Assembly (NCBI GenBank): GCA_965649825.1
Contig: OZ287711.1
Span: 1-25,000 of the forward strand
Length of the DNA stretch: 25,000 nt
Direction of reading: 5' to 3'
Source: Penicillus capitatus
Taxonomy: Eukaryota; Plantae; Chlorophyta
Within the stretch, counting starts at the first letter, position 1. Each line of letters begins with the position of its first letter. The notes beneath the pieces are model-generated. The model saw only the letters and a program-made list of their open reading frames with translations. It did no database searches and was not told where the DNA came from. This document shows, piece by piece, positions 1 to 25,000 of the stretch. Position numbers and translations under genes: made by a program.

Positions 1-1854
1 CAATGCATGCACCAGCACCGTCACACTGGACACATCGAAATGTGTGGGATTCGCAGTGAACTGTCGTTTAGAAGCAAGAATGGCAACTTCTGGCTTGAAG
101 TCGAAGTGTGCACACGTCATCAAGAACCCACTCAATTGATTGGGGTTCAGAATTCCTTTTTTCAGTCCTTCGTCGAATGTTGCACTCAATCGTTCTTTCA
201 ATTTCTCTACAACAAAAGCTTTCTGATTGCAGTGACAACTTGGAATGAGTGTACCAGATGGGTTTCTACAGATGATCGAACTGAGACGAAAGTAGTTTAG
301 AAGCTGCCCGGCATGAAACGCATGCAATCCAGACTCCGTCAGTTTGACTCCTTTCTGAATGAAAGATCGCGGCAATGGAGTGTATGGAATGACCAACGAT
401 CGAAGGAATTGCAACATGTCGAGGGGAGAAAACACATCCATCTTGTGATCGACGACTTCACACAAACGCTCCACAAGTTTTCGAGGCTTCGGGATGGACA
501 GATGACTCAAAGCAAGTGCGACATTCATCAGATCCCGTTTTGCGAACTTCTCCATTCTCGACTGCAAGGCGTCATAGAGAGAAGGGAGAAAACGACTTGT
601 GGATGGTCTTGCTCCTCCCAACATAAAAAATCCTTGGACATACTCAACAAGAATCATAATGGTGGATCATCAGACCTGTTGCCGCAGAAATCAATTGTTC
701 CACTGTCATGTCACCGTACTGCGTGCTGGTATGTTCCATAGCTTGTTGGAGAAAGCTATCAAATGGTCGTCCGTTGATAAAGACCGTTCGAAATCGAAAA
801 CCAAACTGACCCATAGAGCGCAACATGATCGAATAACTTGCTGGACTCATGTGACCCAAATGCCTTTCTGCCTAAATCGAGTAAATGACCACGCAGTCTC
901 CGACGCTTGAGGATACTTGTTCCAACAGACTGCGGATGAGACTGTGGTGCTTTTCAATGACCCATGTGTGTTGTTTAACTTGACTCGATACGGACACAAT
1001 GCGATGAAGCATTGTCACGATATGCTCACCATTGATCAAATGTGCTTCGCACTCCAACAGCCGGCGATAAGAATTCAGCAAATCTACAAATCAAACATCA
1101 CCATCGCGACCTTGTGTTGTGCTGGAGGCCTTCAAGGATGAAACGCTTCTCTAAAGTGGGAGCGCTAAACGCCAGATTCTGCAAACTTTTTTTTGCATCC
1201 AATGCGATGAACATAATGGCGTTGTTTAACCGAGACGCCTGTCCTGTGCGAGGAGACACTCTCACTGTATCTCTGGGATCAACACGCATTCCAGTTCGAC
1301 GAAACTGTTCACAGAGGACATCGCGCATAAGGCCCAGGACATTCCATGCACTCTGTTTCACGTCATCTCGCTCCAGACCTCCAACTTTAGCAACCCTTTC
1401 AACCTCATTGATGGCTTCAAGAGAGAGTCGAGAAATCGTCGCGTTAATTGGATCCGGATCAGGAATCGTTGATGGCGCTGGATCATTGTACAAAGGAGCT
1501 CTTTCAACGATGGAACGATGTCGAGGACGACTTAACGACCAGCTCCGATTCTCCAATCGAGTGTCAGATGGGAATTGCTCTTTACTTTTGAACGCGTCCT
1601 GCACAAATCTGCTAGTGAATGTGCGAGTTAACAGTGCAGCAGAACGACTCAACAGGATAGGCGCTGTATTGACCAGATGGATCTTCCCTGGTACTGTCTA
1701 GTCCCGACGTCGCGCATCGTTTGACGAGACGAAACTGCAAACACACGCGATCAACGCCGACAGAACGGGAAACTCGTGGAATGGAGGTTACCGCTTGGTT
1801 GGAATTGAGTTCCTTCCGCGGCTTACACTGTCGCATTAACTGGGAAGGAATCAT
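1..1854 (-). CDS. Alpha-solenoid helical-repeat protein, probably an organelle-targeted RNA-binding protein (OPR/HPR/FASTK-RAP-like); 3' end lies outside the window
   Basis: ATG at 1854. Phase-consistent GT-AG introns at 1653-1599, 1144-1084 and 916-872 join the short track ORFs into one frame, and the frame is open from 660 to 1. Degenerate ~37-aa amphipathic repeats are visible (MSPASYSIMLRSMGQFGF / MTVEQLISAATGL / FAKRDLMNVALALSHL / FSPLDMLQFLRSL / FHAGQLLNYFRL / LNPNQLSGFLMTCAHF / FDVSSVTVLVHAL). The N-terminus is Ser/Arg-rich, like a transit peptide. The junction near 610-680 is not resolved. The family call comes from pattern recognition only. Confidence 0.6.
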
Positions 1855-3257
1855 TCTGGACCATTCAGCAAAGAAACGTCCACGGCGCGTATAACACGCC
1901 TCGTCATTGTCTATGGTGTGTTTCTCGTTCTCGCACTTTAGTCAATAGTGTGTATCGAAAGCGACCTGGGTTTTCGAGGAAGCATGGGCGAGTCCGACGA
2001 GGTCCTCGAGATGCAGGATCCGTGACACCACAGCGAAGACACTTTGCTGACCTCTTGAAATGCCACCTGAATGATTTGAAGGAAAACATCCATGTGATTC
2101 CCTTTTTTCTTAGCTGATCACTTACTCTGTGACAAGTGACTGCTCTCTAGCGGGGGAATTGAAGTCGTTGAACCATTCTTTGCGATGGAGTGGCTATCGA
2201 TCGTTTTAGATGATTACTTAAATGCGTCCGATCTCTAAGAGGCGAACTGTAAATGGAAATGAATTCTGTCAAAGTTTAAACTAAGAAGTGTACCACAATT
2301 GAGCCTTCAGTTAACCTAACGGCAGTCTGGGCTCATAGAAGATAGGGTACTCGCCACGTGCACTTGTAGGCAACAACACAATGCTGTAAAAGTGAACGAG
2401 AGGAGAGAAGTTCAATCTCAACCAAACCATTCATGATCATCGCTTTTATCAGAACCTCTTCAGTGGTCATTATCAGCCTGGAAAGTAGGTACATCGGCTT
2501 CCTTAGCAGGGAAAAGAAAACCCAAGGACATAACTGTTGCGTTGTTCGAATCCCATCCCACTTTTCAACTACGAAAGTGAAAGTGTTGCTCATGACGTTA
2601 GAATCTCGCCATCAGACTCTGCTCGACGACAAGGAAGATTCGCCTTTTCGCCCTCCGTAACTCCGTCCGTCACGGCGACAAAGAAAAATGTGAAGAATCA
2701 GATACCTCTAGTGATTAACATGTGCTCTTTCAGACGTGTTCTGTGTCCTCAAAGAACATAATCGCAGATAAAGTCTCTCAGGATCACAAAAGAGCACATT
2801 CACTTTTAAGGGAAAGAACACGTCACTGTCGCGGCAGTGCATTGCATCTGTTTCCATCGTTCGGGGTACACGAAGAGAACTGGTATAAAACGGCTGCCCT
2901 TTTAGCTATTGTAATCAGCCTCAAGCCCAGCATTCCGTTCTCACGTGGAGTGGATTTCAGGAATTCGCCATGGACTCGACGGGCCGAGTTCTGTAATGTG
3001 CTTTCTGTACTTTATGTCGTCTTTCCTATCGCTGACACTTCAGAAGAAGTTTCGTTTAAGAGAACATTGGTCTGATACGACAACAACAATCTGAAACTTT
3101 TCTTGTTCAAGATGGAGTACAGGATTGCGAAGAAAACACAATCGAGGAACTAAACGCCTTGAGTGGCGGAGCGCATATGGATGATATAATGGAAGGACGA
3201 AGTCCATGACAGAAGAAAAAACGAACACACATGCCCTGATATAATGATGAACTTTAT

Positions 3258-3731
3258 TCAATGCCTATCCAGGCACGATGGTGGTTTTCTGAGACGAGCA
3301 AATAAAACTGGACGTTCATGTAATGGTTGCTGAGGACGAAGCTGATCCCATTAGCCTCCGTAATAACCGCCATCTAGCAACACACCTGTATTATTATTGA
3401 CATGGCGATGTCGGTTTTCTTACTCTTCACATTTTCTTGCCAATCGTTCGACTTGTTATTCTCTCCGCTGGCACACTTGTAGCAATCTTCTTCGTCTTGT
3501 TTGTAATTGACGTGGTGAAGGAGCTTGCTGGAATCGTGATCTACGTCACAGTCCTCGTCCGCGCAACCTTTATTATCATCTCCATCCCAGTTATGCTGGG
3601 ATAGTTCTGTTCGCAGGCACAGACAGACAAGTTGTAACGTTAGCAAAGGGGAAGGTCTTACGTCTGGCAGAAACATGAAACAAGAGGATCCCCGCAAGCA
3701 TAAAAACACTCAAGTTCATCGAGCGCGTCAT
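3258..3731 (-). CDS. Small secreted acidic, Cys-containing protein of unknown function (~116-120 aa)
   Basis: Exon 1 is 3731/3719-3662 and encodes a signal peptide-like MNLSVFMLAGILLFHVSAR. Intron 3661-3607 (GTAAGA...CAG, 55 nt) joins it in phase to exon 2 (3606-3386), which is the track ORF frame (QLSQHNWDGDDNKGCADEDC...DEEDCYKC...). A probable intron at 3385-3330 leads to a last exon ending in TGA at 3258; this last exon is less certain. Confidence 0.5.
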
Positions 3732-6143
3732 GATGAAAGCGCCTGCGGATGGGGAACAAAGAACAAAACGCTACTGTAGACGGAGGTTGCAATCTTCGCG
3801 AATTTATAAGGTCGCAGCGACAGGTATAGACGCGTTCTCGTTGTTCCTTGCATCTGCCTGAAATATCGTTATCTTCTGTGGTCGTGAGAAGTGAAGGAAA
3901 GGCAATACGATTCTTGGGGACGCGACCCGCGGTTCGAAGACCGCTTCGCCACAACAGGAGATTATCCGAGGTTTATGAATGCATACTAGTCACGTTCGAT
4001 GAAACTGTACACTCTCAAGTATCTGAATAGCTGCTGATGGAACGATTGGTCGTCCATTGGGCATAATCCATGACCTTGTGAGAATGGCGCAATAGAGGCT
4101 TGTCTTACTGCTCTAAGAAGTGGACGCCGTACGAACGCTCGATCTCTTGATCGACTTTAGAAAAAAGCGTTCATCTTTCTTCGCCTGCGTCGAAGAAGAT
4201 CGCATTCCTGCCCATTGACCTTCGTCACAGATGTCTTTGAACAAGCAGCTTCTATAAAACAAGTTTTGGTCAGATACAATATGTATCCCACAGCACTGGG
4301 TATTGATGCTTTTTGAGAAAGTTACTTGAAACGAGTCTAGAACCACTCGTTTCGTCTATTCTGCTGACGTTAAGCACTTCGCCTCATCCGCAGTACGAAA
4401 TTGGATGCCACAACCGGTTTCTGTCGACGTCCTTGATGGTCTTATTGAAACTGGACCAACCGACGGCGTCAACGCAGGGTCAATCGGGAGTAGAGATCGC
4501 GCAGCTAAGAATAAGTGTGCTGTCATCACGGACAGGAAACGAAATGGCGATACGTGCGTCTTGGTCTGCATCTGCGTCTTTTCAGGACTTCGCAGGACAA
4601 ACCGAATGTTGAAAAATCAGAAAAGTAAATTGAAAATGAAAATGGTCTGCATCGGCGGCGACCATGTTACGTCAGTTCGTTTGTGCCTGTGTAAAATGCA
4701 GCGATCCGCAATAGGACTAGCATCTCAGTCACCTTAAGTTTTGGAAGAGATGCTTAATCGCAGGATCTTTCTTATGATCCTAGTCTCTATGTATACAAAA
4801 TGGTGCATTGTTACAAAAGAGATCGTTGGTGTGTTTAATAGTGGAGGACAGAAGCAAATGTCGACTAGCTCAGATATCTACCCACAGTAGAGGATCGGGT
4901 AAGCTTATCGACTTGTTTAAAGGCATGTGAACATGAATGAACGACAAAAAGCTGCGCCTTAATGTTCTTGATGAACTATTTTTAAGACCGATTGTGTTTT
5001 TCTATCCGATACGACATAACAGCACAACAAATACAAACAGCAGAAAGTAGTCTGGATTTCTTTCTGTTTTGAATTTTTGCTGCATCGAATCCAGAACTTT
5101 AGCCACTGTTGAATTAAAATGAACTCCCCTGAAACTAACTCTTTGAGCTCATTTACGAAACGATGCAAGGGAAAGCGTCCCGTTTAATCGTGAACGCATC
5201 TTACCTGTCTTGAGGACGGCAAACGCATTCGGAAAGTAACCCTGTATTTCATACAATCGGCCACTTTCACTGAAGGATTCAAAGGAATACTGTAAGGAAT
5301 GCAGTTTTATACTGCGTACTGCCCACACAGGCTGTTTGTTGTACCCTCCGTAATGATCCCGCTTTGTCAAATCTAAGATGATTGAACATGACGATGACGA
5401 TGTCATCTGAGCTGGACAGAGTTCTGATGATGTTCGATACAGGGCAGTGTCATGTTCAGCTTCTAACTGCGTTTTGCGAATTTGTTTTCTATTCCTCCAC
5501 TAACAGTGCATTTAGACAAAAGCTTGTCGTCTAATCAGATTTAGTAAAATCTCATTTGATGATTGATTGCCTCGCGCATTTCAGTGATAATGCCGAACTG
5601 AGGATCCTGACTGCGGCTTCCGTCTGTACTAGTGATTGATCAGTCAGTGACAGTGATTTATTCTCACTGAAAAACATTAGTCGGACGAAAACGAACGATT
5701 TCTTACGATATCCCTTTGAACGAATGTCCAACCGTAGGGGGAGGAAGTTTGGAAGAATTCGAAAACCGTACAAGTGTCTCTGTTTATTCATAACGACCAT
5801 ACAACTTTATCATGTCGCCAAGGTGTCGCAGACAAGTTAGCCGCCAGCCTCCGGCGGAACTCCTGTCTTAGCCTGAAAGCATCAGAATGCAGAATACAAG
5901 CTGTTCCTCTCGCATCGTTCCTGTTGTACAACGTGTACTTCGTGGACAAGTGACAGAAGAGACAACTTCTTGTCTTTGATTGGCAGCTAAGCTACCCGTC
6001 GACAACGGTCAGACGTCTATGCAACACTGGAACTGATTTGAAGCTTGTCTTAAAAACGCCAACCTCCAACAGACGTGAAGACATATAGCACGTGTTCTTC
6101 GAATTAGTCTTCAAAGCTCGTTCAGTTATAGAGTGCTTCCGCC

Positions 6144-7228
6144 ATGAAGACGATGCGACCGGCATTTTTCACCGCCCTGGCGTTGCTCTGTCTTTTCAGT
6201 GTCGAAGGAGAACGTTTGAAAGGTGGATGCGTTTTCACCTGCTTCAGTTGCTGTATCACTCACTGCTTTTGTGTGCCCTTTCAGTTGGCGGACTCTGCGC
6301 TTGTACAGCACTCCACGATCCTGTCTGTGGAACCGACAAAAAAGACTACTCGAATAGAGGCTGTGCAGATTGCGCTGGCGTAAAAGTCGCTTGCAAAGGC
6401 AAGTGTCCTTGCAAGTCTCCAATTAACGGCTGCGTCTGCACCACGGAGTACGCTCCGGTTTGCGGAGTCAATGGAAAGACATACTCGAACAAATGTAACG
6501 CCGACTGCGCCAACGTTGCAGTCAAGTGTCCAAAAGAATGCCCCTGCAAAGCAGAAGAGTGTTCCTGCGATCCAAAGCCAGTGTGCGGATCAAATGGTGC
6601 AACATACCTGAACAGATGCCAAGCGAAGAAGGCTGGTGTTGCCGTCGCATGCGATTATGCGTGTCCATGTGCGTTACCATTCCCTTATCTCACAACCAAT
6701 GTTCTTCTGTTGTATTGCAGGCCGTGCTTCTGTTCCTTGTGATAACATTTCTTGCATATATCCCTGTTCAAGGCCCGAATGTCCAGCAGTTCCAAATGCT
6801 CGATGTATCGGTACTGGCCCATGTGGTTGCGCAGAAGTCTATTACGCAGACTGCAAAATCGTCGATTGCAGTACGGCAATTGTTTTCTGAGTACGTACGA
6901 CATGTGTGATATGATGACACCTAGGTGCTCAACCGCAGCCAAGCATTGTCCCTACACCTAGTGTACGTCCCTCGTTCTGCTTGAAGGAAGTGAGCATGAG
7001 CAGTCTTGTCATGGTATGTGTATCTATCTATTCTTGCTGCAGGGCTGGACATGTGACTTTTCCAACGGATATCGTCCAAAGAAGGATAGATGCTGCCCTG
7101 GACTGAAGTGTTGTGAGGATTGCGTCAAAACCATCGGCAAAGGAGATAAACATGACATTAATGCCCTTCATTTGTTCCCATTCCCAACTAAGAAGAAATG
7201 CATGCGTCGTTGCCCTAAGTGTCGTTAG
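6144..7228 (+). CDS. Secreted multi-domain Kazal-type protease inhibitor-like protein (3 Kazal-like domains, a Cys-rich module, a Pro-rich linker and a C-terminal knottin-like module), 287 aa
   Basis: Exons 6144-6222, 6285-6668, 6721-6870, 6925-6989 and 7043-7228 total 864 nt, with all four GT-AG introns (52-62 nt) in phase. Signal peptide MKTMRPAFFTALALLCLFSVEG. Kazal motifs CACTALHDPVCGTDKKDYSN, CVCTTEYAPVCGVNGKTYSNKC and CSCDPKPVCGSNGATYLNRC. The C-terminal module reads CLKEGWTC...RCCPGLKC. Confidence 0.85.
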
Positions 7229-9294: not shown

Positions 9295-9299
9295 CAACA
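9295..9299. repeat. Target-site duplication CAACA (left copy)
   Basis: CAACA immediately precedes the left LTR, and the same pentamer follows the right LTR at 10807-10811. Confidence 0.9.
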
Positions 9300-9396
9300 T
9301 GTCAGCGGAAGGCTTCACTGATTACAGAGCAAGGTACAAATGTGTTCACATCCATGTGTTCATACGCTACAGGTGATGTGACAGTCTTGTCTGACA
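9300..9396 (-). repeat. 3' LTR (97 bp)
   Basis: Base-for-base identical to 10710-10806 on manual comparison. TG...CA ends with a 6-bp terminal inverted repeat. Contains TGTAA on the minus strand at 9326-9322. Confidence 0.95.
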
Positions 9397-9399
9397 TGG

Positions 9400-9414
9400 T
9401 CCCATCCACCTTCC
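9400..9414 (-). promoter_or_regulatory. Polypurine tract
   Basis: GGAAGGTGGATGGGA (13 of 15 purines) on the minus strand, separated from the 3' LTR by CCA. Confidence 0.6.
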
Positions 9415-9468
9415 GTTTGCGCAGACTCCGAAAACGTGAAAACCCTTCGAAAAATGAACAGAATTAAG

Positions 9469-10551
9469 TCAATCGATACCCGAGGTAAACGTCCGTTTAA
9501 ACACTGAGAAAATGCTCCATCCTGTAGATGCTACCTCATCAATCGCTTCTTGTGGACCCTCCGCTCTCTGACGCGCATCCGATGTCGTCGGAGTTGCTGA
9601 CTCGACCGCACCCAAAGCCCGCGCCCGCGGACAATCCTTAATCAGATGCCCTTTGCATCGGCAGAAATAACAGATTCTGCCTCGACCGACGATCCTTGCG
9701 CCATCTTCTTTTGTCACGTCAGTCTTCGTTCGCCGTTTCTGTGGATACCGTCCAATGTCGTGCAGCACTCGCTTCATCTGCTGCAACGTCTTCGAACTTC
9801 GTTGTCTTTCTAGTGTCCTCGTCGACATCACCTCAGCTGTCCTTTCGAAGCTCGTCTGCACATCCTTTTGTAGTGTCTTCACCTCGTTGGCTAGCGATTG
9901 TAGACATGGCACCAAATCGGGTGCCGAAATGAAATTCTTTTTCGCCTCTGTGAAGGCCGTTTCAGTCTCTGTCAGTTTCTGTTGTAGAGAGGAAGCTTCT
10001 TTGCGGGCCTTGTCTACTTCGTGTGTTGCCTGGTGGACATCCTGTAGGGCCTCGATCATGCCTTGTCGTTCCTTGGTAGCGTTTTGTTGCGCCTCATCAA
10101 CGTCTCCTCGCAGTTTCTCGTTAATTCGCCGCTCTTCCTGCAGGCTTTTCAGCAATTCTTCCTTTTCCGCGCGAATCACGCGCAACGCCCTTTGTGCATT
10201 GGTGAGGTTTTCACCTGTTGCGGTCAACTCGCGCCGCAGTCCATCACTCGCTTGTCTTTCTTCCTGCAGCCTCTGCGGCAGGTCACGTCTCTCCCGTACC
10301 CATGCGCCAATCCGCTCGAGAAAACGCTTCATCTTATTCATGTCCACCAACCAGTACCACGCATCGTCGACAACGTCCTCTGGCTGCGTCAACACCGGGC
10401 GTCCCCTCAGTTTAGGGAAACAGTTTTCGTCTTCGCCCGCTTCGGTTATAACGTTAAGCAAGGCATAGTCGCCTAGTTGATATGTTCCATACAGACTTCT
10501 CCTTCTCTCTTCATCTTGACCCTGCTCTCTCTGTTGTGGTGCTCGACTCAT
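9469..10551 (-). CDS. Gag-like protein: long coiled coil plus one CCHC zinc knuckle (360 aa from the first ATG)
   Basis: Intact intronless ORF filling the element interior; the first in-frame ATG is at 10551, while the track's GTG start is at 10641. Contains CYFCRCKGHLIKDC (CX2CX4HX4C) and a heptad-rich E/K/Q/R/L segment of about 170 aa. Confidence 0.85.
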   Translation of the reverse strand: MSRAPQQREQGQDEERRRSLYGTYQLGDYALLNVITEAGEDENCFPKLRGRPVLTQPEDVVDDAWYWLVDMNKMKRFLERIGAWVRERRDLPQRLQEERQASDGLRRELTATGENLTNAQRALRVIRAEKEELLKSLQEERRINEKLRGDVDEAQQNATKERQGMIEALQDVHQATHEVDKARKEASSLQQKLTETETAFTEAKKNFISAPDLVPCLQSLANEVKTLQKDVQTSFERTAEVMSTRTLERQRSSKTLQQMKRVLHDIGRYPQKRRTKTDVTKEDGARIVGRGRICYFCRCKGHLIKDCPRARALGAVESATPTTSDARQRAEGPQEAIDEVASTGWSIFSVFKRTFTSGID

Positions 10552-10697
10552 CCTTGCCGAGGCTTCTTGAAATTCCTTGGTTCGTCTAGACACGTCTAGA
10601 CAGGTCTCAACAACTTCCACACAGGAAGATGCGTAAAGCACGCAGCAAAACGCTTCACGTCACACAGACGGAGTTCAACCGAAGGAGCGTAGACTCA

Positions 10698-10709
10698 GCT
10701 CCGAAACCA
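10698..10709 (-). promoter_or_regulatory. Primer-binding site, initiator tRNA-Met-like
   Basis: TGGTTTCGGAGC abuts the 5' LTR and matches the canonical plant-type iMet PBS TGGTATCAGAGC at 10 of 12 positions. Confidence 0.65.
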
Positions 10710-10806
10710 TGTCAGCGGAAGGCTTCACTGATTACAGAGCAAGGTACAAATGTGTTCACATCCATGTGTTCATACGCTACAGGTGATGTGACAGTCTTGT
10801 CTGACA
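10710..10806 (-). repeat. 5' LTR (97 bp)
   Basis: Identical to 9300-9396 and immediately followed on the minus strand by TGGTTTCGGAGC. Confidence 0.95.
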
Positions 10807-10811
10807 CAACA
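10807..10811. repeat. Target-site duplication CAACA (right copy)
   Basis: Matches 9295-9299. Confidence 0.9.
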
Positions 10812-11552
10812 CATGACCCATTATCATTCATTTCCTGCGAAAGTGAAACATCCGATTTTTACCCTTATTGGAGCATCGGTCAGGATCCCGACACTTGATA
10901 ACAAGAGAAAACTGGATTGGCAAGATCTTGACTACTCAGAGTGCTTGCGACAACACGTGTCCTTGTGCTGCTTCAAATGGCTTCTTAACACACCGATGAA
11001 CGCATTCAATGAAATGATCATTGCAATACAACCTGAAGACTGATTGAGCGCGTGGATGGGCAGCCAATTGATAGAATCAATCCGGCCATGCGATCCAATC
11101 TTCAGAGAGATAAGCACAAAGGAGGTTTCTTCGCCTCCAAATGCTCGTTCAGCTTCTCAGAAGAAACATTCGTCATCGTTTCACGTTCCCTGTCGAATCA
11201 AAATTGATTCGAGAGAAGGCAACACGCATCTCGTTACTAGATATCATTGAAAGACAGCGTCGACGAATTCGTCATCGACATAGAAACGAGTAGATGATGC
11301 CTCCTCCATTCAACTTGAACGAATGGTTGCATGTGGAAATCTTCTGCAATGATGGCGACAGATTTCTCTGGCGCAAATAAAGTCACATCACGCCAAACGA
11401 AACGACGGCTACCCTGTTTACGCGATCGCTGTACAAACAATCATTATCTCATGGTCGTTATGCTGTTGCCAAGCATAGGCGAGGCGAGTTATGAGCACCT
11501 CTGAGTCGGAAGACGAACTAGAAGAACGTATTTGGCTACAGAAGTACTGTGA

Positions 11553-11571
11553 CTCTCTCTCTCTCTCTCTC
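11553..11571. repeat. (CT)n microsatellite
   Basis: Nine CT units read directly. Confidence 0.9.
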
Positions 11572-12239
11572 GATTTCCAAGATCAACGGCTTGCGTCTTA
11601 CCTGAGCCAATGTTGGAACGCTGTGGCCACTCTCTTCGACCGGTATGCACATATGCATAACGACGGCACTAGGAGACACCGTCACGCAAATTCTCTTTCT
11701 ATGAAATTGACAGTCGCAATCGAGAGGCCCTTGGCGAGAGACTCGACCAATTTTCCATACCCGCGCATTGGGACAAGATCTCTTTTCGAGATGACGTGAC
11801 CTGGAGAGCAAAGGAACCGCGTTCAGCAACCGAAGGATAAGACTTTCCGTGCTTCCGAAGTGATTTTGAGAATTCCGGATGTTGCAAGCGATTGTGATAG
11901 ACGGAACAGCTTACGTGCTAAAAGTGAGGGTCGAATTCACCACACGTTGTCCCGTTAAAATACAGCACTTAGCTTCTGATGTCCCATCAAAGGACATCTG
12001 TCCCCTTCCGGGTCACAGCAGCTTCGGATTACGTAAACGTTTCTGCCGAACTTCGTCTATAATCCCTTTTTATCTTACACCGCGCTTCGGCGCTGCAAGT
12101 TTCCTCCGCTTCTGAAGATATCCGACTTAGCCATTTCACTTCAAGGCGACTTAGCAGGAAGCCACTCGATATGCTCGACACGGACACACACGACAGTGTC
12201 CAAGAGCGTTGCCGTTCGTTTTCCTGTACACGACAAGGA

Positions 12240-12941: not shown

Positions 12942-15053
12942 AATGCCGTTCAAATATTTACTCGATCTGTTTCTTGATAACGTCATTTTATTCAGGAAAA
13001 TCAACTTTTGCCGGAGTGTTGTACTTGTATGATCCACTATCGTGTTGTTCTGAAGAGTAAGAGGATTTTTTCGTTTTCAACATAGGATCTTCCATATCTC
13101 GTTATCTAGAATATCGACTGAATCAGTGGCACCACCCTTCAAATCCTTATCTTGCCACTGAAGCAAGTTGGCGGCGTCCCAATGGACGTAAACGCAGTCG
13201 TGACACTGTCACGTTTTCTTAAATGGGTACTGGATACATATGCGGGTTTACTGTGACTGGAAACTGTATCTTCGAGGGTGTTTGTTGCACAAAACGATTT
13301 GTTTGATTTGATCATCTGTAAGATCACTTCGACTCAATTATTCTAATGGCAACAGAAATCTCTTGTGGGTTTCTGTTCGTTCTCTCTCGATTCGTCGGCC
13401 GCAAAATGCCTCTTGCTTTCGACTTCTGTCAGATTTTACAGACTCTTACGCGTCTTCATTAGATAACATGAAGTCGATAAGGTCAGCGCTCTTAGCTAAA
13501 TCGCCTCTTCATTTAATGTCCTTTAGAGTAGCGCAAATTTCGTCTTCTTATGCGCCGAAGTGGCTTTGAAAAATCAACTGTGAAGTTAAGAGCAAAAAGC
13601 TCCTTACATAAGAAGACCTAATAACAAATGATTCTTCTGGCAAGGCATCAAAGGAACAAAACTGTCCCCAAATCTAATAGGCTGCCTCCATGAGACAAAA
13701 GAGTTTCTGATTAGAGCGAGCTTTCGTGGCGAACTGACGAAAATGGCAATGAACTGGAGCATCTGAACAGCGATGCAAAACGTATCGTTCCAGTTGTCAT
13801 CTGACAGACAAGATGTCTCATGTTTGTGCCACATTGTTGAATAGCTAACGCCTTCACCGTGCACCATCGACATAACTCTGCCGAATACAATGAATCGGTT
13901 TGGTTCTGCTAGCAGCGTGAACTCGTATGTTGATATCTCGCAATTTGTTAGTGCTTTTATAGCGAGTGACTCTCGATTTCTCGTATCCGCCAATATGCTC
14001 TTCATTCTGTCCGTGCATGACAGAAAACACACAAAATTCAAGCTCAAGTTTCTTCCACATTCGAAGAGGATAGACAGGAAGACCGCCGCTCGACTGAAAC
14101 CGCAACGTGCATTCTCTTCCACTCCAAACATGTGTCAGTTCTAGTAAGGTGGGTTTTGGAATCGCTGCAACGTGTCTTTCGACGAATATCGGTGATTCTT
14201 GAGCACAGAGGCATACCGTCTTTCCTTAAGATTAACGGCGCGATTCATAAAACCGTCCGTATGATGCGTAATCTAACCTTTCTGCGTCTCCTTTGAACAC
14301 GTGCCATAATGACATTCATTCCAAAATCTACTGGGAGTAGGATGACCGTTTCATCGAATGAGAATGAAGCAAATCATTTCCAATGCGCTATTCCCGAAAT
14401 CCCACGAGGCGAGTAAGAACTTCAAACGCACTGAAGTAGTTTGTGTCTTTAACGCACACCAATCAAGAAAGAGATCTCTTCCGTTGTTGAATCACTTCAC
14501 ACCTATCCGTTTCTGTTTTCAATCCCTACTGCCACGTAAACGCCATCGGGATTGCGAGGCGCGAGTTTTGTCAGGTGTCCTACCTGCATTCGGACATGAA
14601 AAGAGAAACAGTTTTACGGTGACAGTGAGAGAGGGTGACACAGAAGACAGTTTCTGCTCTACGGGTAATCCGGCAGGCGAAAGGATTGTCTCTTAAGAGT
14701 ATTTGGAAAATGACTGGGCAATGGGTTCCAGGAAAAGATGTCATTCGTCATGCTGCCAATCACCACCGCCACATTCCCAATCCGCGAATGCTATCATCTC
14801 CATGTGATCTCATATCTCATCGAAGCAAAGAGAGAGTGAGAACACAGTGTCTGCTGGCAGTGACCTTACTGGAACCGTTGAAAGGACACTGGAGAGCAAC
14901 AGTTTGGACTTCAAAGTAAAGAACGAAGTGAAAACGAACACGAAGCAATGATGAGAAGACAAGAAGACAGGTTTCTAGGAAAGGCCACCGAAGTCGCCGT
15001 CAAATGTCACGTCAAGGTAGGGGTTTGTGTAGGGAGGGACTTAAGAGTAAAAA

Positions 15054-15427
15054 TGCCCCTGTCCGTAGACGAAAAACGGTTCAACGTAAGCGTAAACTGA
15101 CCGCTGAATGGCGGTGCCCCCTGTCCGTAGACGAAAAACGGTTTCTCATAGGCGTAAACTGACCGCTGAATGGCGGTGCCCCCTGTCCGTAGACGAAAAA
15201 CGGTTTCTCATAGGCGTAAACTGACCGCTGAATGGCGGTGCCCCCTGTCCGTAGACGAAAAACGGTTTCTCATAGGCGTAAACTGACCGCTGAATGGCGG
15301 TGCCCCCTGTCCGTAGACGAAAAACGGTTTCTCATAGGCGTAAACTGACCGCTGAATGGCGGTGCCCCCTGTCCGTAGACGAAAAACGGTTTCTCATAGG
15401 CGTAAACTGACCGCTGAATGGCGGTGC
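15054..15427. repeat. Tandem minisatellite, 6 x 62 bp
   Basis: The unit GTCCGTAGACGAAAAACGGTTTCTCATAGGCGTAAACTGACCGCTGAATGGCGGTGCCCCCT starts at 15061, 15123, 15185, 15247, 15309 and 15371. Copies 2-6 read identically (copy 6 ends at 15427), and copy 1 differs in one internal patch. Confidence 0.95.
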
Positions 15428-15567
15428 TCCTCCCCTTTCATGGTAAATTAAGCAACTGCACTCGCAGCGTCGGATACATAAGCACCATTGCAAGTTGTTT
15501 TTATTCCTCTTTCTCTCGCTCTTTACTTTCCTGTGTATCTCTGCGGAAATCCGTGCTTCATCGAAGC

Positions 15568-18500
15568 ATGAAACTCATAATTTCCTTCTTTTTCTTGTTT
15601 TTGACCACGGTTCACGGCATACGCGGAAAAGGGCACGTCACTGAAGATGACATTTCAAACAAAGGTCGACCCTGTGACATTCACCGCGTGGTTGGCGAGG
15701 ACTTACTGCTTCAGAATCGCTTTCTTTTTTGTCTCTTCTCATGTTCCTCTATGCAATCGAGGCAAATATAACCGTCGGTAGAGATACTGATATTTTCTGT
15801 TCTAGGACGCCGCATGACACAAGATGCAAGTGACACGAGCCGAGTGCCTTCCAACGTTACGTTAAGGGAGGCGTTCAGAAATCTGCGTCGCGGTCAAACC
15901 GTCGTCTTGGAGAATAGAAACTATGCATTCCAGATAGCATTGAGGATCGATGTCCGCGATGTCACACTCCTCGGCGACGCGGGAGGCCGAACAGTGATTA
16001 CTTGTCCCCCTGACGACAGCGCTGTCCTCATACGGTTAGACGACTCAGACACTCACTCAGTCGCCGTTCTTGACCTTTGGCGCTGTTCCTGGTCGACAGG
16101 TCGTCGAATGTGACGATTTCGGACATAACATTCCAAGACTGTCGAGACGTTTCGGCCGTGGTGGTGGAGAACGATCCCGATGATGCTTCCAGGACAACCA
16201 GCGCAGTCTTCGAGAGGGTGTCATTCAAAAACAACACTCAGGGACGGCAGACGGCGACAGGGTCGTTCGCCCTGGCGCAGCCAATGGGAACGCTGACCAT
16301 CCACCCATGCTCTTTTGTGGAGTGCAGTGGACCGATGCCGGAGGCGGAGGTTCGGCATTCGACATTCGAGGACAACGAGGCTGACCAAGGCGGAGGCATT
16401 CACTGTGCCAGATGCAAGCTGCGGATCGTGAACTCCACGTTCAGCAGCAACCGGGCTCTGTCCAATGGAGGAGCCGTTTTTGCGCGAGATGCAGGGACGG
16501 TGGTGGACATCGTCGACTCCTCGTTCGTCGACAACACAGTGACGCAGGACGGCATACAGTTCGAAGTCGCACGCAGCGACGGCCGTCCGATAGAGCTCGT
16601 GAATCACTTTACTTTCAATTTCCCCAGTAATGGCGGCGGCGCCCTTTTTATTAACTCCGTTGCAAATCTCTCAGTGGCTGGGTCTTCGTTTCTGGGCAAC
16701 CAGGCCCCAAGTGGAGGAGCCATGAAGTCCATTATCGTCGAAAGCACTCTCTCATCGAGTACGGACAGATCCTCCGTGCTCGTTGTGAACAGCACGTTCG
16801 AGCAGAACCACGCCAGTGTTCCGGATTCAATGCCAGTCCAGTACACCGAGGACAGCATCGGAGGCGCAGTCTACTTCGTATGCAGTGCGGAGAACTTGGA
16901 CAAATGGAGGTTCGACAACTGCACCTTCAGAAGCAACACGGCGCGTCACGGAGGCGCTCTCCACGTGGTCGCACTTCAGCAGAACGCACTGACGATGGAC
17001 GACTGTCTCTTCGAAGACAATCGAGCGGAGGAAGCGGGAGGAGCTGTGATCCTGAGGAACACTGGCGCGTTCGAGACAAACGCCTCTGCCTGGTACAGAA
17101 ACGCGGCGAATCTTGGCGGAGGCATCCTGGTGACGAACGGGGCAAACTTCAGAACGCGGGGCCTGGCAGGTCTTATCAGCGACGGACGCGTTGGCAGGTC
17201 GACTGTGCTCCACGAAAACAGCGCCGTCTACGGAGGAGGCATCATGTGTGCTGGGTGCGGAGAGATGACGCTGCTCGACGCCAACATCACCTTCAACGTT
17301 GCAAGCGATTCCGGCGGCGGTCTCTACGTTCTGGACGCGCCAGATGCGATATCCATACACCAGTCTCTGTTCGCCAGCAACGTGGCGTATCAAGGGGGTG
17401 GCATCGCTCTCAGATCTGCTGCCTTCGTGTCCTTCAGAGTGACCCAGCCGTCCCTCTCGAACATCCTCGTGAACAACACAGCCGTGGTCGGAGGAGGTCT
17501 CTTCGCAGAGGCGAATCGACAGCGACAAAACAAGCTCTCGGTACGTCTGCTCCCTCCCGAGTACGTGCTGCTAAGTACTCGTGTCGCTTGCAGATCACTA
17601 GAACCCGATTCGAACGGAACCGAGCCGTGCGGGTCGAGGACCTGGGATTTCCGCTCGCCAGAGACCAATCGGAAGCGGCAAACGACACCGGCGGCAGGTC
17701 GCTGCTCCAGCAAGCTGCACAGTCGGACGGTCTGTCGTCCACTGCTTCCCCTTCCTTCACCTGCGGAGAGGGCGGCGGCGGCGGCATGTGTCTGGTGTAC
17801 AGCGTCCTGCCAGAGAGCTCGATCGGCGACGTCATCGTCACAGGAGTGGCCTTCGATGGCAACGTCGCTTCCATAGGAGGTATGCCTGTTCGCAGACCGA
17901 AACCACTCGTCGAGGCGTCCTTCTAGGCGGTGCCTCCGTGCAAGTGGCCGGAGACGGCTGGAACCGACATCTTCAGAATAACTGTCCGGAGATCCGACCA
18001 ACGACGGAACCCTGTCGACTCTTTCGGCTGGTGAACGTCACCGCGACGGGAAACGTTGCCCAGTACGGAGCGGGAGGATGGTTTGTCTCCCATCCAGAGT
18101 CCGTTCTCGTCGGATGCGACGCGCTCGATCCAGAGGGATGGGTGGATCTGCTGTCCGCGTCGAAGTCTGATCGGCTGTCGAAAGAGTACTGTCTGCGACT
18201 CCGGAACAACACTGTTCTGGTGACAATCGCCGATCTCACTACCGAGTCTCCTGTTGATCGCTCGCATGTGTTCAGGACGCGGATGGAGAGTACGGAAACG
18301 ACATTGCGAGCGGTGTCTACTCGCTGAAGCTGCTGAACCCAACGTCTCCAATCGTCAACCACACGGGCGGAAAGACGCTGATTCCTCCGTGCCCCAGTCC
18401 CGAAGACTGCAGCAAGAGCGAATCGGATGGCATCAGAATCGCCGTCAAGGATGCCTTCAATCAGACAATCACTGGCGGCGTTGCGGATGCAGGTAAGCTT

Positions 18501-20789
18501 CTGAGTGATGGGCACCGTCTTACCGAGGTTCATTGACAGAACTGCAAGTGCTCTTGGTGTCGACGGCTATTGTCGGAGAACAAGATTATCTGGCGACGAA
18601 AGGCATATTCAACGTGAATAATACTTTGGGAATTGGCATTGGAAGTACCTCCGAGATTATTTTTCGTTCTGGGGGTCTGAAAACAAACTTGACATTCTCT
18701 ACCAGGGAATGCTTTCCGGGAGAGATCGAGGCAAGCAATGAGTGCCAGCTCTGTCAAACAGATCAGTATTCCTTCAATACCTCCAGCATCTGCAGTGACT
18801 GTGAGAATCGTGCCAAATGCAGTGGTGGATCCAGTCTTGTCCCAATCGATGGTTATTGGCACTCGACTCCCTTCTCTCCACAGTTTCACGAATGCATCAT
18901 TAAAGAAGCTTGCAAACGTACTGACCGCGAGACAGTTTTGAGAGCGTACTATGAAGACAATGACAAGATTTCTGCTGAGATCGCCACATTGAATGCATAC
19001 ATATCAAACGATGGTGGAACGACGCAGCGGCCGTCATACGATGACTACATTCAATGCTCCGACGGATACAGTGGTATTCTGTGTGGTTCCTGTGAAGCAG
19101 GTTATGGGCACTCTGCTGGTGGCGAGTGTATCAAGTGCCTGAAAAGCAGAGGACTATCAATCATGATCATTTCCGTTTCAACACTGCTTAACCTTTTGCT
19201 ATTGATTTGGACAGTAAACTCGACGCTAGAATTGTTCGAAAACATACTTCAGACTAGCAGACAACAAGCCAACAGAACACCGCCGCCTCCCGGACAAGCC
19301 AACAGAACACCGCCGCCTCCCGGACAAGCCAACAGAACACCGCCGCCTCCCGGACAAGCCAACGGAACACCGCCGCCTCCCGGACAAGCCAACGGAACAC
19401 CGCCGCCTAGCAAGGTTTGTTAATTCTCTCTTTTCATTGAACACGATCACTTCTTTTTTCTTCAGATTCTCGCCAACTATATTCAAGTCACAAGTTTGGC
19501 GATGAATATCAATGTGGACTGGCCAGGTATCATCCGGCATTCTCTCAGAGTACAAGGTGAGACTGGCGAAGCGTAATCTCAGAGTGCTCTAATGTAGATG
19601 TTTTCTAGATTTCGCAATGATGCCAGCCGTCGGAACATACTATGTTCCAATCGAATGCACATTCGAAGAGAATGTCCACGGCGAGAATGGACCCGACACA
19701 GTCAAGGCTTTCCTCCTCCGGATTTTCCTACCTGTCTGCATTAATGTATTGATTGTCATTGCAGGATGTCTTTTCATTGGGCTGTGTCAAAAAGCCTGCG
19801 GGAACTGTTTCTTTGGTAAGCAGCGCCAGACTATCATGCTCCAAATGAAAACAATCATCCCTATCGCCTTATATGCCACTCTCTCTTTTTCCTGGAGCGA
19901 TCTTTCGTTGGAATTGATGAAGGCATTTAACTGTATTGGAGTGGATGAGACACAGTCTGACCCACCAAATGAGTATGATCTTTATGCTTTAGAAAAGGAC
20001 TCTGTCTGGGTAGAAGATCCCACTCTATATTGTTCCGAAGGCGATCATAGAGTGGTGAAGCGTGTAGGAATTGCTGGTTTTGTCATTCTCCCTTTACTGA
20101 TGGTTTTACTTGTATTTTGGATAGCAATAGATTTGACAGTAATTGACAATCAAAATGCCACTTCTGTCGGCAGTAGCAAGAATAGTATGCGTTTGTCAGA
20201 GAAAATCCGCCATGGAACGAAAAAACTGGGTGCGACAGCAGCAGATATCTTCGCCAATAGAGATACCTCTTCTAGAGACGATAATAATAGTGAAATCTCT
20301 GAGTTTGCTGTAGCTTTCCTCGCGCAAGAAATTCTCAGCGCACTGAGGAAAGTGCTTGTGGCAGTAGCAGTTGTCCTTGCCGCGACGAGAGGGTCTAATC
20401 TTCAGGCCGCCCTGATTTTAGGAATCCTTTGTGTTTTTCTAGCCGCTCACCTGTTTTCTAGACGTTTCATGGTTCGCGAATCTGAAAATCCCAGCTGTTC
20501 AAACAGTGACATCGGGTTGCGCTCAGTGGCCAAATGGGGAAGATCGAGTCATGGATTGCACGCTTTGGAGTCTGCATCACTGCTTGCATCGATCTCGGTC
20601 TTCCATTCAGCTATTGTGTTTGGCGATCCCGAGACATCAGAAGCACTAAAGACGGCACTGGGAGTTATTGTTTTTCTTCTTAATGCACTCTTTGTGTTCT
20701 CTATACTCTTTGTTATCCTTTTCCCTCAGGAAGAAGAAGAGGAAAAAAAGAAGAGGAAAAAAGAAGTTCAGCGCCCAACAAACCAGTAG
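15568..20789 (+). CDS. Large surface protein: signal peptide, Pmp-like parallel beta-helix repeats, Cys-rich (GCC/TNFR-like) repeats and a multi-pass TM anchor (1,569 aa by hand model); paralogue 1
   Basis: Exons 15568-15664, 15806-16034, 16100-17540, 17594-17879, 17927-18219, 18276-18492, 18540-19414, 19466-19556 and 19609-20789 total 4,710 nt, with all introns GT-AG and in phase. Repeated FxxN...GG[A/G][I/L/V] motifs (FEDNEADQGGGIH, FSSNRALSNGGAVF, FRSNTARHGGALH, FEDNRAEEAGGAV). Cys repeats CFPGE..CQLCQTDQYS..CSDCENRAKCSGG and CSDGYSGILCGSCEAGYG. The TM region starts LSIMIISVSTLLNLLLL and ILANYIQVTSLAMNINVDWP. Confidence 0.88.
19265..19408 (+). repeat. Coding tandem repeat, ~4.8 x 30 bp, encoding (G)QAN(R/G)TPPPP
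   Basis: The unit CAAGCCAAC(A/G)GAACACCGCCGCCTCCCGGA repeats in frame at the end of exon 7. Confidence 0.95.
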
Positions 20790-22785: not shown

Positions 22786-25000
22786 ATGCAATTCGCTGCC
22801 GTCATCTTCCTCGCGCTGCTAAGCGCAACTCGGAGCGTCGGTTTAGAAGGAAACGGCAGAGTGAATAGTCTCTTGAGCGAAGGTCGGTCTGAGAGTATGT
22901 ATGCAGTGTCGTTTGCGCGGACTCATCGCTAAGATTAGTTAGTTCCTTTCTTTGTCTCTTTTCATCATCTCCTATTCAGTCGAGGAGGATATAACCGCCA
23001 ACTACATATCTGAAACGAATTTCGTTTATTGTATCTAGGACGCCATCTGACTCAGGATGAAGTCGATGAACCCCCAGTACTTTCCAACGTTACGTTAAGG
23101 GAGGCGTTCAGAAATCTGCGTCGCGGTCAAACCGTCGTCTTGGAGAATAGAAATTACACACTCAGAAGAACACTGAGGATCGATGTCCGCGATGTCACAC
23201 TCCTCGGCGACGCGGGAGGCCGAACAGTGATTGCTTGTCCCCCTGACGACAGCGCTGTCCTCATACGGTTAGACGACTCAGACACTCACTCAGTCGCCGT
23301 TCTTGACCTTTGGCGCTGTTCCTGGTCGACAGGTCGTCGAATGTGACGATTTCGGACATAACGTTCCAAGACTGTCGAGACGTTTCGGCCGTGGTGGTGG
23401 AGAACGATCCCGATGATCCTTCCAGGACAACCAGCGCAGTCTTCGAGAGGGTGTCATTCAAAAACAACACTCAGGGACGGCAGACGCCGACAGGGTCGTT
23501 CGCCTTGTCGCAGCCAATGGGAACGCTGACCATCCACCCGTGCTCTTCCGTGGAGTGCAGTGGACCGATGCCGGAGGCGGAGGTTCGGCATTCGACATTC
23601 GAGGACAACGAGGCTGACCAAGGCGGAGGCATTCACTGTGCCAGATGCAAGCTGCGGATCGTGAACTCCACGTTCAGCAGCAACCGGGCTCTGTCCAATG
23701 GAGGAGCCGTCTTTGCGAGAGATGCAGGGACGGTGGTGGACATCGTCGACTCCTCGTTCGTCGACAACACAGTGACGCAGGACGGCATACAGTTCGAAGT
23801 CGCACGCAGCGACGGCCGTCCGATAGAGCTCGTGAATCACTTTACTTTCAATTTCCCCAGTAATGGCGGCGGCGCCCTTTTCATTAACTCCGTTGCAAAT
23901 CTCTCAGTGGCTGGGTCTTCGTTTCTGGGCAATCGAGCCCCAAGTGGAGGTGCGATGCGATCTGTCGTTGATGCTCGCTTTTTCTCGAGCACGAACAGAT
24001 CCTCCGTGCTCGTTGTGAACAGCACGTTCGAGCAGAACCACGCCAGTGTTCCGGATTCAACGCCAATCCAGTACACCGAGGACAGCATCGGAGGCGCAGT
24101 CTACTTCGTATGCAGTGCGGAGAACTTGGACGAATGGAGGTTCGACAACTGCACCTTCAGAAGCAACACGGCACGTCACGGAGGCGCTCTCCACGTGGTC
24201 GCACTTCAGCAGAACGCACTGACGATGGACGACTGTCTCTTCGAAGACAATCGAGCGGAGGAAGCGGGAGGAGCTGTGATCCTGAGGAACACTGGCGCGT
24301 TCGAGACAAACGCCTCTGCCTGGTACAGAAACGCGGCGAATCTTGGCGGAGGCATCCTGGTGACGAACGGGGCAAACTTCAGAACGCGGGGCCTGGCAGG
24401 TCTTCACAGCGACGGACGCGTTGGCAGGTCGACTGTGCTCCGCGAAAACAGCGCCGTCTACGGAGGAGGCATCATGTGTGCTGGGTGCGGAGAGATGACG
24501 CTGCTCGACGCCAACATCACCTTCAACGTTGCAAGTGATTCCGGCGGCGGTCTCTACGTTCTGGACGCGCCAGATGCGATATCCATACACCAGTCTCTGT
24601 TCGCCAGCAACATGGCGTATCAAGGGGGCGGCATCGCTCTCAGATCTGCCGCCTTCGTGTCCTTCAGAGTAGTCGAAGCATTCTACTCGAATATCCTCGT
24701 GAACAACACGGCCGTGGTCGGAGGAGGTCTCTTCGCAGAGGCAAATCGACAGCGACAAAACAAGCTCTCAGTACGTCTGCTCCCTCTCGAGTACCTGCTG
24801 CTAAGTGCTCGTGTCGTTTCCAGATCACTAGAACCCGATTCGAACGGAACCGAGCCGTGCGTGTCGAGGACCTGGGATTTCCGCTCGCCAGAGACCAATC
24901 GGAAGCGGCAAACGACACCGGCGGCAGGTCGCTGCTCCAGCAAGCTGCACAGTCGGACCGTCCGTCGTCCACTGCTTCCCCTTCCTCCACCTGCGGAGAG
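22786..25000 (+). CDS. Pmp-like beta-helix surface protein, paralogue 2 (runs off the window end)
   Basis: Exons 22786-22882, 23039-23267, 23333-24770 and 24824->25000. Exon 1 (97 nt) and exon 2 (229 nt) have the same lengths and phases as in paralogue 1. Signal peptide MQFAAVIFLALLSATRSVG. No stop codon was seen in the exons compared. Confidence 0.85.
23082..25000 (+). repeat. Near-identical duplicate of 15849-17770
   Basis: Colinear at offset 7,233, then 7,230 after one 3-nt indel. Intron 2 is identical, and intron 3 has 5 substitutions in 53 nt. Overall identity is roughly 95% by eye. Confidence 0.95.

Follow-up and report, generated by a model that had tools for sequence, protein, structure and literature searches.

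What is the 1507-bp element at positions 9300-10806 of contig OZ287711.1 (assembly GCA_965649825.1), which has long terminal repeats (LTRs) at both ends and a single open reading frame (ORF) between them, and how could it have moved? The stretch analysed here, called the window, comprises the first 25,000 nucleotides of the contig, and the element is encoded on its minus strand, i.e. it runs from right to left. The answer that we favour, and to which we give a probability of about 75%, is that it is an intact copy of a family of non-autonomous LTR retrotransposons in a eukaryote, probably a chlorophyte-like alga, that the family is helped in trans, and that the ORF encodes an RNA-coating protein.

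The two LTRs (9300-9396 and 10710-10806) are 97 bp each and identical at 97/97 positions. They start with TG and end with CA, within a terminal inverted repeat TGTCAG/CTGACA. A 35-nt probe from the LTR has exactly two matches in the 25-kb window, whereas none was expected from 100 shuffled sequences. The five nucleotides CAACA are found at both outer edges of the element, the left copy at 9295-9299 and the right copy at 10807-10811, and constitute a 5-bp target-site duplication. The ORF (10551..9469, minus strand, stop codon included) is uninterrupted and encodes 360 amino acids from the first ATG or 390 from an upstream GTG. No Pfam match to a protease, reverse transcriptase, RNase H or integrase is found in the element. 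All of this agrees with the first-pass annotation of the sequence, which had described identical 97-bp TG...CA repeats, the CAACA duplication and an intact 360-residue frame lacking these enzymes. When the flanks are joined to reconstruct the empty site, the longest ORF has at most 117 codons; no long frame crosses the site, and the insertion thus looks intergenic.

The internal region has TGG next to the LTR at both ends, so that a primer-binding site (PBS) could be read on either strand. We take the minus strand of the window as the sense strand because the ORF runs in this direction, because TGTAA occurs in the LTRs on this strand only (10732-10736 and 9322-9326), and because the 12-mer TGGTTTCGGAGC (10709..10698) is invariant in the family while the other end is variable. 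The order in the sense direction is then 5' LTR (10806..10710), PBS directly at the LTR (10709..10698), leader (10697..10552), ORF (10551..9469), a short trailer, a purine-rich stretch (9434..9397) and 3' LTR (9396..9300). The PBS-like 12-mer, the polypurine tract (PPT) and the TGTAA motif which had been pointed out earlier are thus all present; since the element lies antisense to the window, the PBS and the PPT are at the ends opposite to those given by a plus-strand reading.

The element does not stand alone. The ORF has homologues in about 30 protein clusters with 37-92% identity, none of which is named or carries a confident precomputed Pfam domain. Eleven copies were inspected, based on the DNA fetched around ten homologues and three copies found on the public contig OZ245997.1. 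Pairs of LTRs were found in ten of the eleven; they are from 97 to about 267 bp long and differ by 0-3 substitutions, one pair in addition by a 2-bp indel. Eight copies have unambiguous 5-bp target-site duplications, all different (CAACA, ATTGT, AGATG, GAAGT, CGGCT, ATGGC, GAAAC and AACAC), and those of two further copies are ambiguous by one base. Some of the protein clusters contain 4-16 near-identical members on different large contigs, which puts the copy number at several dozen or more. The earlier expectation that other copies exist is borne out by ten of them at other sites. The longer copies carrying pol for which it also allowed were not met among the eleven: one ORF fills the space between the LTRs except for a short leader and trailer, leaving no room for pol, and the gene tables list no pol families in the inter-LTR regions of the other copies. 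A copy of 2.6 kb (locus L004) owes its length to a nested AT-rich insert of about 1 kb (2935-3964 of that locus) with long imperfect terminal inverted repeats, resembling a miniature inverted-repeat transposable element (MITE), which sits in the leader; in a copy of 2.0 kb (L128) the ORF is frameshifted. That the element is a transposition-derived member of a family of non-autonomous LTR elements we consider highly probable.

Three leads from the search for relatives were dropped. A homologue of 505 amino acids (P0006) is not a longer protein, its extension being a read-through of the 5' LTR by the gene caller. The reverse transcriptase adjoining the copy at L001 was rejected as a partner, as it is of the type found in long interspersed nuclear elements (LINEs). 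A scan of JGI metagenomes for an LTR end followed by the PBS (GACAN{0,2}TGGTTTCGGAGC) gave at least 120 loci; none of the matches listed encodes the protein, the contexts inspected among them look like ordinary coding sequence, and the matches were taken as chance. A scan of viral contigs for the family found nothing. Separately, LINE-type reverse transcriptases (zf-RVT, YADD) were seen at positions 1-1540 of L001 and at 1931-3958 and 4775-5668 of L129.

The public record of the locus calls for a discussion of whether the element could be an artefact. The window locus is also present in OZ245997.1 (ena:ERZ25074695:ctg340592_344x_l), a contig of 6,932,391 bp with the title "MAG: Putridiphycobacter sp." (Bacteroidota), on which the three family copies all lie between 172 and 475 kb. 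If this title, that of a bacterial metagenome-assembled genome (MAG), is taken at face value the element would be a genuine part of a bacterial genome, or else a product of misassembly, and the coverage tag of 344x compared to 4-43x for the other contigs carrying the family could be read in the same way. We find this hardly credible. The insertion occurs in two non-identical versions of the locus, in the window and in OZ245997.1 with its ENA twin, and ten independent copies are found elsewhere, with target-site duplications of their own; the first-pass annotation's call of a real insertion is thereby upheld. The DNA around the copies has a low coding density and is eukaryotic in its contents: an E2F/DP factor, proteins with ubiquitin and Kazal domains, proteins with Chlam_PMP repeats, and LINE and LTR elements. 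Two genes in L127 are eukaryotic hallmarks, a fused wybutosine gene (TYW3-Kelch-TYW2-JmjC) split over several frames at 811-5123, and an intron-containing gene for elongator tRNA-Met(CAU) at 14336-14425. The nearest named relatives of the TYW3 neighbour are from Volvox (39%), Chloropicon (36%) and Amorphochlora (39%). When the TGTAA signal is added, a chlorophyte-like alga is indicated but not established; the host is a eukaryote and, judged from these sequences, probably such an alga. We suspect that OZ245997.1 is a chimeric or mis-binned contig. It should be noted that this 6.9-Mb record is used as the genome of a bacterial species while it holds eukaryotic sequence, and that it can seed false reports of eukaryote-like genes in bacteria.

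The two versions of the locus also bear on the age of the insertion. They are 99.65% identical over 15.4 kb, with 30 single-nucleotide differences, and about 95% identical in the region of the PMP genes. Further differences concern the lengths of GACGAT and CT microsatellites and the copy number of a 62-bp minisatellite; the places noted for the differences as a whole are 5399, 11565, 15056-15430 and 15300-19200. From this comparison the window and OZ245997.1 probably represent different haplotypes or strains. The element is present in both and identical, and the insertion therefore predates their split. The element had been called very young because its LTRs are identical. This we cannot follow: zero divergence over 97 bp has no dating resolution, and the insertion is common to two haplotypes or strains which differ by about 0.2% in the flanks.

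The protein has been retained by selection. The ratio of nonsynonymous to synonymous substitution rates (dN/dS) is 0.24-0.44 in every pair of copies tested, and hardly any variation is seen in the C-terminal half, in the zinc knuckle and in the last residues (FTSGID); from this we conclude that the protein was selected through rounds of transposition. What kind of protein it is has been approached by profile and structure. The only relevant Pfam match of the ORF is a sub-threshold one to zf-CCHC (E 0.15), on CYFCRCKGHLIKDC. It marks a knuckle of the type CX2CX4HX4C (9631..9672), in which C294, C297, H302 and C307 are invariant in the family, preceded by RRRR-rich basic linkers, a feature of the nucleocapsid (NC) type. 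A profile of 26 family members was compared to 1.84 billion representative proteins. About 20 family members, full-length or partial, match beyond the knuckle, and a handful of more distant relatives have the motifs FIxxPdLxxxLxSL, KxLxQMKRVLHDIxRxPxRRR and RxCYxCRxKGHLAxDC in common. The remaining matches in this search cover nothing but the knuckle, and outside it there is no match to any gag-pol polyprotein. No named protein, Pfam family or PDB family matching the ORF was found.

Models made with AlphaFold (AF2) are of moderate confidence, with a mean predicted local distance difference test (pLDDT) score of 67 for the full protein and 74 for the N-terminal part. They predict a small beta-rich N-terminal domain (residues 23-69; 10345..10485) which has no structural match, one long helix of about 135 residues (71-206; 9934..10341; pLDDT mostly >90) which looks like a coiled coil, two shorter helices, a disordered basic linker, the knuckle and a disordered tail. 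The all-helical capsid (CA) fold of two domains is absent from the models. Foldseek searches of PDB gave nothing with E <3 for either model, and the sequence search of PDB only the knuckle of another protein. A chromodomain-like N-terminus, suggested by four non-significant Foldseek matches of the full model, was rejected since modelling of the isolated domain did not give it again. The designation of the ORF as gag-like, made before any of these searches, is therefore justified by its position and by a nucleocapsid-type knuckle and not by a capsid domain; neither a Gag domain in Pfam, nor a capsid-like fold, nor, in the gag of the two pol-carrying elements compared, any similarity beyond the knuckle of one of them has been found. 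In architecture the protein appears closer to a coiled-coil RNA-coating protein such as ORF1p of LINEs, which is meant as a resemblance and not as homology. As there is no likeness to the gag of these two elements beyond the knuckle, the role of the protein has to be read from architecture, and that it acts on its own RNA we consider an even bet.

These results also bear on the classic origin of TR-GAG elements, by which the ORF would be the much diverged gag of an autonomous Ty3/gypsy or Ty1/copia element, from which the whole element arose by internal deletion. Such an origin fits with where the ORF lies, with its CCHC knuckle towards the C-terminus after a basic region, and with the PBS shared with autonomous elements (see below), and the comparison with autonomous-type elements covered only two of them. 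Against it speak the missing Gag domain, models which lack the two-lobed all-helical capsid and gave empty structure and PDB sequence searches, gag-pol matches confined to the knuckle among 1.84 billion proteins, and the retention of the one-ORF architecture in a relative with about 21% identity. We regard this origin as unlikely.

The relative in question (P0069; L133) is on a scaffold of 1197 bp from a different ENA assembly, ERZ23486785, and its protein is about 21% identical to that of the family overall. Its order is an LTR of about 105 bp, an AT spacer, the PBS TGGTTTCAGAGC, a leader with CTCCGTCTAAGTGACGT, one ORF, a purine-rich stretch and an LTR. The PBS differs by one substitution from that of the family and the leader motif is kept. 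The contigs which carry further distant relatives are 0.7-2.2 kb long and come from ENA, JGI and Logan, with the exception of that of P0043, which has 1.6 Mb. Judged by these sequences the one-ORF architecture is old and is found beyond one sample.

Could an LTR of 97 bp still perform the functions of an LTR? TGTAA is present in every non-autonomous LTR of the family, inside a conserved core which in the window copy is CCTTGCTCTGTAA (9322..9334 in the 3' LTR and 10732-10744 in the 5' LTR), and is followed in all of them by the conserved CTTCCGCTG in the putative U5. In chlorophyte green algae poly(A) signalling relies mainly on UGUAA (PMC1868727, PMC4025486), and TGTAA likely has this function here. 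In 7 of 9 non-autonomous LTRs a motif scan found a TATA-like box, some 38-46 nt before TGTAA, with the variants TATTTAA, TATATAA and TATAAAT in long LTRs and the degenerate TATGAAC in those of 97 bp; in the window it is at 9358-9364, about 38 nt upstream of TGTAA, and at 10768-10774. With a TATA-like box and TGTAA in place, 97 bp would still be enough for a promoter-bearing U3, a U5 and, between them, an R of perhaps 20-30 nt.

The leader, 140-180 nt in length, is conserved even between subfamilies whose proteins are only about 40% identical. In the window (10552..10697) it contains the conserved blocks CTCCGTCTnnGTGACGT, a CYTCC-N5-GGARG hairpin and repeats of GTCTAGAC. RNAalifold predicts four hairpins: one which ties up the 3' part of the PBS, an invariant one of CGUC/GACG, the CYUCC-N5-GGARG hairpin and a palindromic one with GUCUAGAC. 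Compensatory changes are seen at 11 of the 33 predicted pairs, including a G:C to A:U change in the PBS hairpin of L133. The leader is thus a candidate for a packaging or dimerisation region.

The PBS is the feature which connects the family to other elements. It starts with TGG, the complement of CCA, and is located 0-2 nt from the LTR in the different copies. It is identical in 11/11 gag-only copies and, within the same assembly, in an autonomous element (L130), in a gypsy-like element (L129) with a LINE nested inside, and in a non-coding terminal-repeat retrotransposon in miniature (TRIM; L131). The element at L130 (3423-8193) is a complete Ty3/gypsy-type element of 4771 bp, about 1.6 kb upstream of a gag-only copy. 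It has identical LTRs of 151 bp (TGTGAGC...AGCACA), a target-site duplication GATGC, the PBS directly after the LTR, and a single ORF of about 1450 amino acids with zinc knuckle, aspartic protease, reverse transcriptase, RNase H and integrase in the Ty3/gypsy order, which runs into the 3' LTR. The TRIM (1935-3660 of L131) is arranged as LTR(278)-internal(445)-LTR-internal-LTR, with all units identical and the target-site duplication AAGGA; its LTR contains TATTTAA and TGTAA, and a tRNA-like stretch precedes the LTR. In this host, as read from the PBS, one primer would serve the autonomous Ty3/gypsy elements as well as two or more kinds of non-autonomous element.

Since the PBS is common to the family and to Ty3/gypsy-type elements, mobilisation in trans is the best reading, and we think the chances somewhat better than even that Ty3/gypsy-type elements with the same PBS are the helpers. 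An autonomous Ty3 or Ty1 partner had been proposed in the first-pass annotation; the shared PBS agrees with the Ty3/gypsy type as partner, and which of its members is the helper does not follow from it. Several observations weigh against the proposal. Within the approximately 0.2 Mb of the host assembly which was examined, the LTR, U5 or leader motifs of the family were found in no autonomous element. The LTR of the L130 element is unrelated to that of the family and has no TGTAA. A comparison with hhalign of the family ORF to the gag of two pol-carrying elements gave a probability below 1%, the only likeness being the zinc knuckle of the L130 element. No host tRNA with a 3' end matching the PBS was found among the loci examined, and the shared PBS may only reflect that one tRNA is used by all LTR elements of the host. 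The unrelated LTR and the dissimilar gags suggest moreover that the small elements are not simple deletion derivatives of the autonomous elements seen. The shared PBS does not single out a specific helper, and the helper would be one of the elements which use this primer.

The TRIM raises the question of whether the ORF is needed at all. It multiplies with the same PBS and no ORF, and the family protein has no homology to known Gag; the ORF could accordingly be dispensable for movement of its element, either as an interfering or competing factor, comparable to truncated restriction factors derived from Gag, or as a captured host gene with a coiled coil and a knuckle. We think this quite improbable: every member examined sits in an LTR element and never occurs as a host gene, purifying selection acts between transposed copies, and a knuckle, a basic linker and a coiled coil are what an RNA-coating protein needs.

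From the PBS and from a tRNA-like stretch at the other end of the element the primer may be an initiator tRNA-Met which ends in ...GCUCCGAAACCA and starts with UUCGGAGU.... Searches of the window with Rfam and ARAGORN found nothing. The tRNA-like stretch is located at the position of the PPT (9397..9434, sense TTTTCGGAGTCTGCGCAAACGGAAGGTGGATGGGACCA), where a purine-rich tract GGAAGGTGGATGGGA(CCA) lies directly at the 3' LTR. The 25-40 nt before the 3' LTR read, in the sense direction, TTCGGAGTCTGCGCAAACGGAAGGTGGATGGGACCA in the window, TTCGGAGTTCCGCGCAGCGGAGATGGATGGGCCCATCCA in L004, TTCGGAGTTTGGCGGGAAGCGTGG in subfamily B, TTCAGAGTTTAGCAGGGAAGCG in L133 and TTGGCGCAGGGAAGCG in the autonomous element of L130. 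Their sequence is colinear with that of the 5' half of initiator tRNA-Met from eukaryotes, which in humans is AGCAGAGTGGCGCAGCGGAAGCGTGCTGGGC (PMC13625232). The first seven bases equal the 5' strand of the acceptor stem predicted from the PBS, and in L133 the same G-to-A change is found in the PBS and in the tRNA-like stretch. Shuffling gave p = 0.008 for the window copy and values from <0.001 to 0.07 per copy, up to 0.16 with harsher scoring. The summed similarity score of ten elements was 103 for initiator tRNA-Met and 57 for the control, the elongator tRNA-Met of the host. The tRNA model of Rfam does not detect the stretch, and in a blind scan of the window for similarity to tRNA it only ties for places 2-4, for which reasons we keep it as a lead and not as a finding. 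The resemblance is suggestive, with moderate support. The primer tRNA of yeast Ty3 likewise makes contact with the genome at its 3' end, there through complementary segments, and the 5' ends of the tRNAs pair together (PMC5371799); by analogy a role in bridging the 5' and 3' ends is possible for the stretch described here. If the resemblance is real it would represent a new cis-element in reverse transcription.

The favoured reading, a family helped in trans with an RNA-coating protein of its own, can be put together as follows. The 97-bp LTR would provide a minimal promoter with a TATA-like box and a very short R with the TGTAA poly(A) signal. The transcript, presumably about 1.3 kb, would carry a 12-nt PBS for the tRNA, a structured leader, one ORF and a purine-rich region for priming of the plus strand. 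The protein, with its N-terminal domain, coiled coil, basic linker and CCHC knuckle, would multimerise and coat or chaperone its own RNA, and would thus be nucleocapsid-like or ORF1p-like and not a capsid. Protease, reverse transcriptase/RNase H and integrase would come from autonomous Ty3/gypsy-type elements of the same genome which use the same primer, and integration would give the 5-bp duplication.

A bolder version can be formulated, in which the family is a long-lived "satellite" lineage of LTR elements and not a decayed gag-pol element, with an ORF1p-like, non-capsid RNA-coating protein of its own. The stretch at the PPT position would duplicate the 5' half of initiator tRNA-Met, with the polarity of the tRNA itself, and serve either as a second site for primer contact or cyclisation, functionally like the bipartite PBS of Ty3, or as a mimic for plus-strand priming, and it would be a cis-signal shared with the autonomous gypsy elements and the TRIMs of these algae. 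This version we put forward tentatively, and as a whole think it rather doubtful.

Some neighbouring features of the window should be mentioned for completeness. A Chlam_PMP/right-handed beta-helix repeat gene is tandemly duplicated (16077-17876 and approximately 23030-25000), the copies being about 95% identical, and more units are found in L128. An ORF at 6092-6742 has two Kazal-type protease-inhibitor domains (Pfam E 2.6e-14), one at 18533-19423 ends in five tandem PPPPGQANRT/PPPPGQANGT repeats, and one at 19617-20789 looks like a multi-pass membrane protein and has no Pfam match. In L128 a short ORF at 11425-11778, also without a Pfam match, contains ILIDEYNTSKCCCCC, which we take to resemble the RuvC/zinc-ribbon motif of TnpB/Fanzor proteins.

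How does the family compare to known systems? The term proposed in the first-pass annotation was a TRIM/TR-GAG hybrid. It catches the TR-GAG-like strategy and the TRIM-like size, and fails in that a GAG domain is lacking and that the element is not non-coding. TR-GAG elements are LTR elements of flowering plants, below 4 kb, with LTR, PBS and PPT, whose only ORF encodes a Gag domain that can be recognised; they lack protease, reverse transcriptase and integrase (Chaparro et al., 2015; PMC4350172). The family shares with them the size below 4 kb, the PBS, the PPT, the single ORF, the missing enzymes, the multiple copies and the presumed mobilisation in trans (PMC4350172). The TR-GAG ORF has UBN2 or Retrotrans_gag domains and similarity to the gag of Copia or Gypsy elements, whereas the ORF of the family has only a recognisable knuckle and no predicted capsid fold; for lack of a recognisable GAG domain the element is not a TR-GAG. 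It also differs in LTRs down to 97 bp, a length down to 1.5 kb and a host which is not a land plant. With the TRIMs it has in common the very short LTRs, the tiny size, the PBS and PPT and the lack of autonomy. TRIMs are non-coding; the family, which keeps a selected ORF of 360 amino acids, therefore does not belong to them. The proteins of the LINE-1 ORF1p type combine a coiled coil with a nucleic-acid-binding module. In a general comparison the family protein is similar in having a long coiled coil followed by a basic nucleic-acid-binding part, and in being encoded by the retroelement RNA on which it presumably acts; it differs in the context of an LTR element and in the absence of an RNA recognition motif (RRM) or C-terminal domain (CTD), and no homology was detected in sequence or structure.

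The Ty3/gypsy elements (Metaviridae) primed by initiator tRNA-Met, among them yeast Ty3 with its bipartite 5'-3' PBS, have the same 5-bp target-site duplication and TG...CA LTRs as the family. The PBS is identical in the complete element described above, and a sequence which resembles initiator tRNA-Met lies by the 3' LTR of the family. The family differs from them in having no pol, and while the 3' segment of Ty3 is complementary to the tRNA, the 3' stretch of the family runs in the sense of the tRNA 5' half (PMC5371799). A gag-only LTR element was not found in the green-algal literature searched, and the family is an undescribed one of non-autonomous LTR retrotransposons which retain a single non-canonical RNA-binding ORF. 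Its product is not a recognisable Gag and is nevertheless selected, and conserved from about 21% identity upwards, which suggests that an RNA-coating or chaperone protein alone can be worth keeping for a hitch-hiking retroelement. With the autonomous element and the TRIM, all on one PBS, the family could make up a compact system for studying which functions a non-autonomous retroelement has to encode in cis. Formal descriptions of non-autonomous LTR elements with a single ORF come from flowering plants, and the same parasitic strategy is seen here in an alga-like protist, with at least one further environmental sample in which it occurs.

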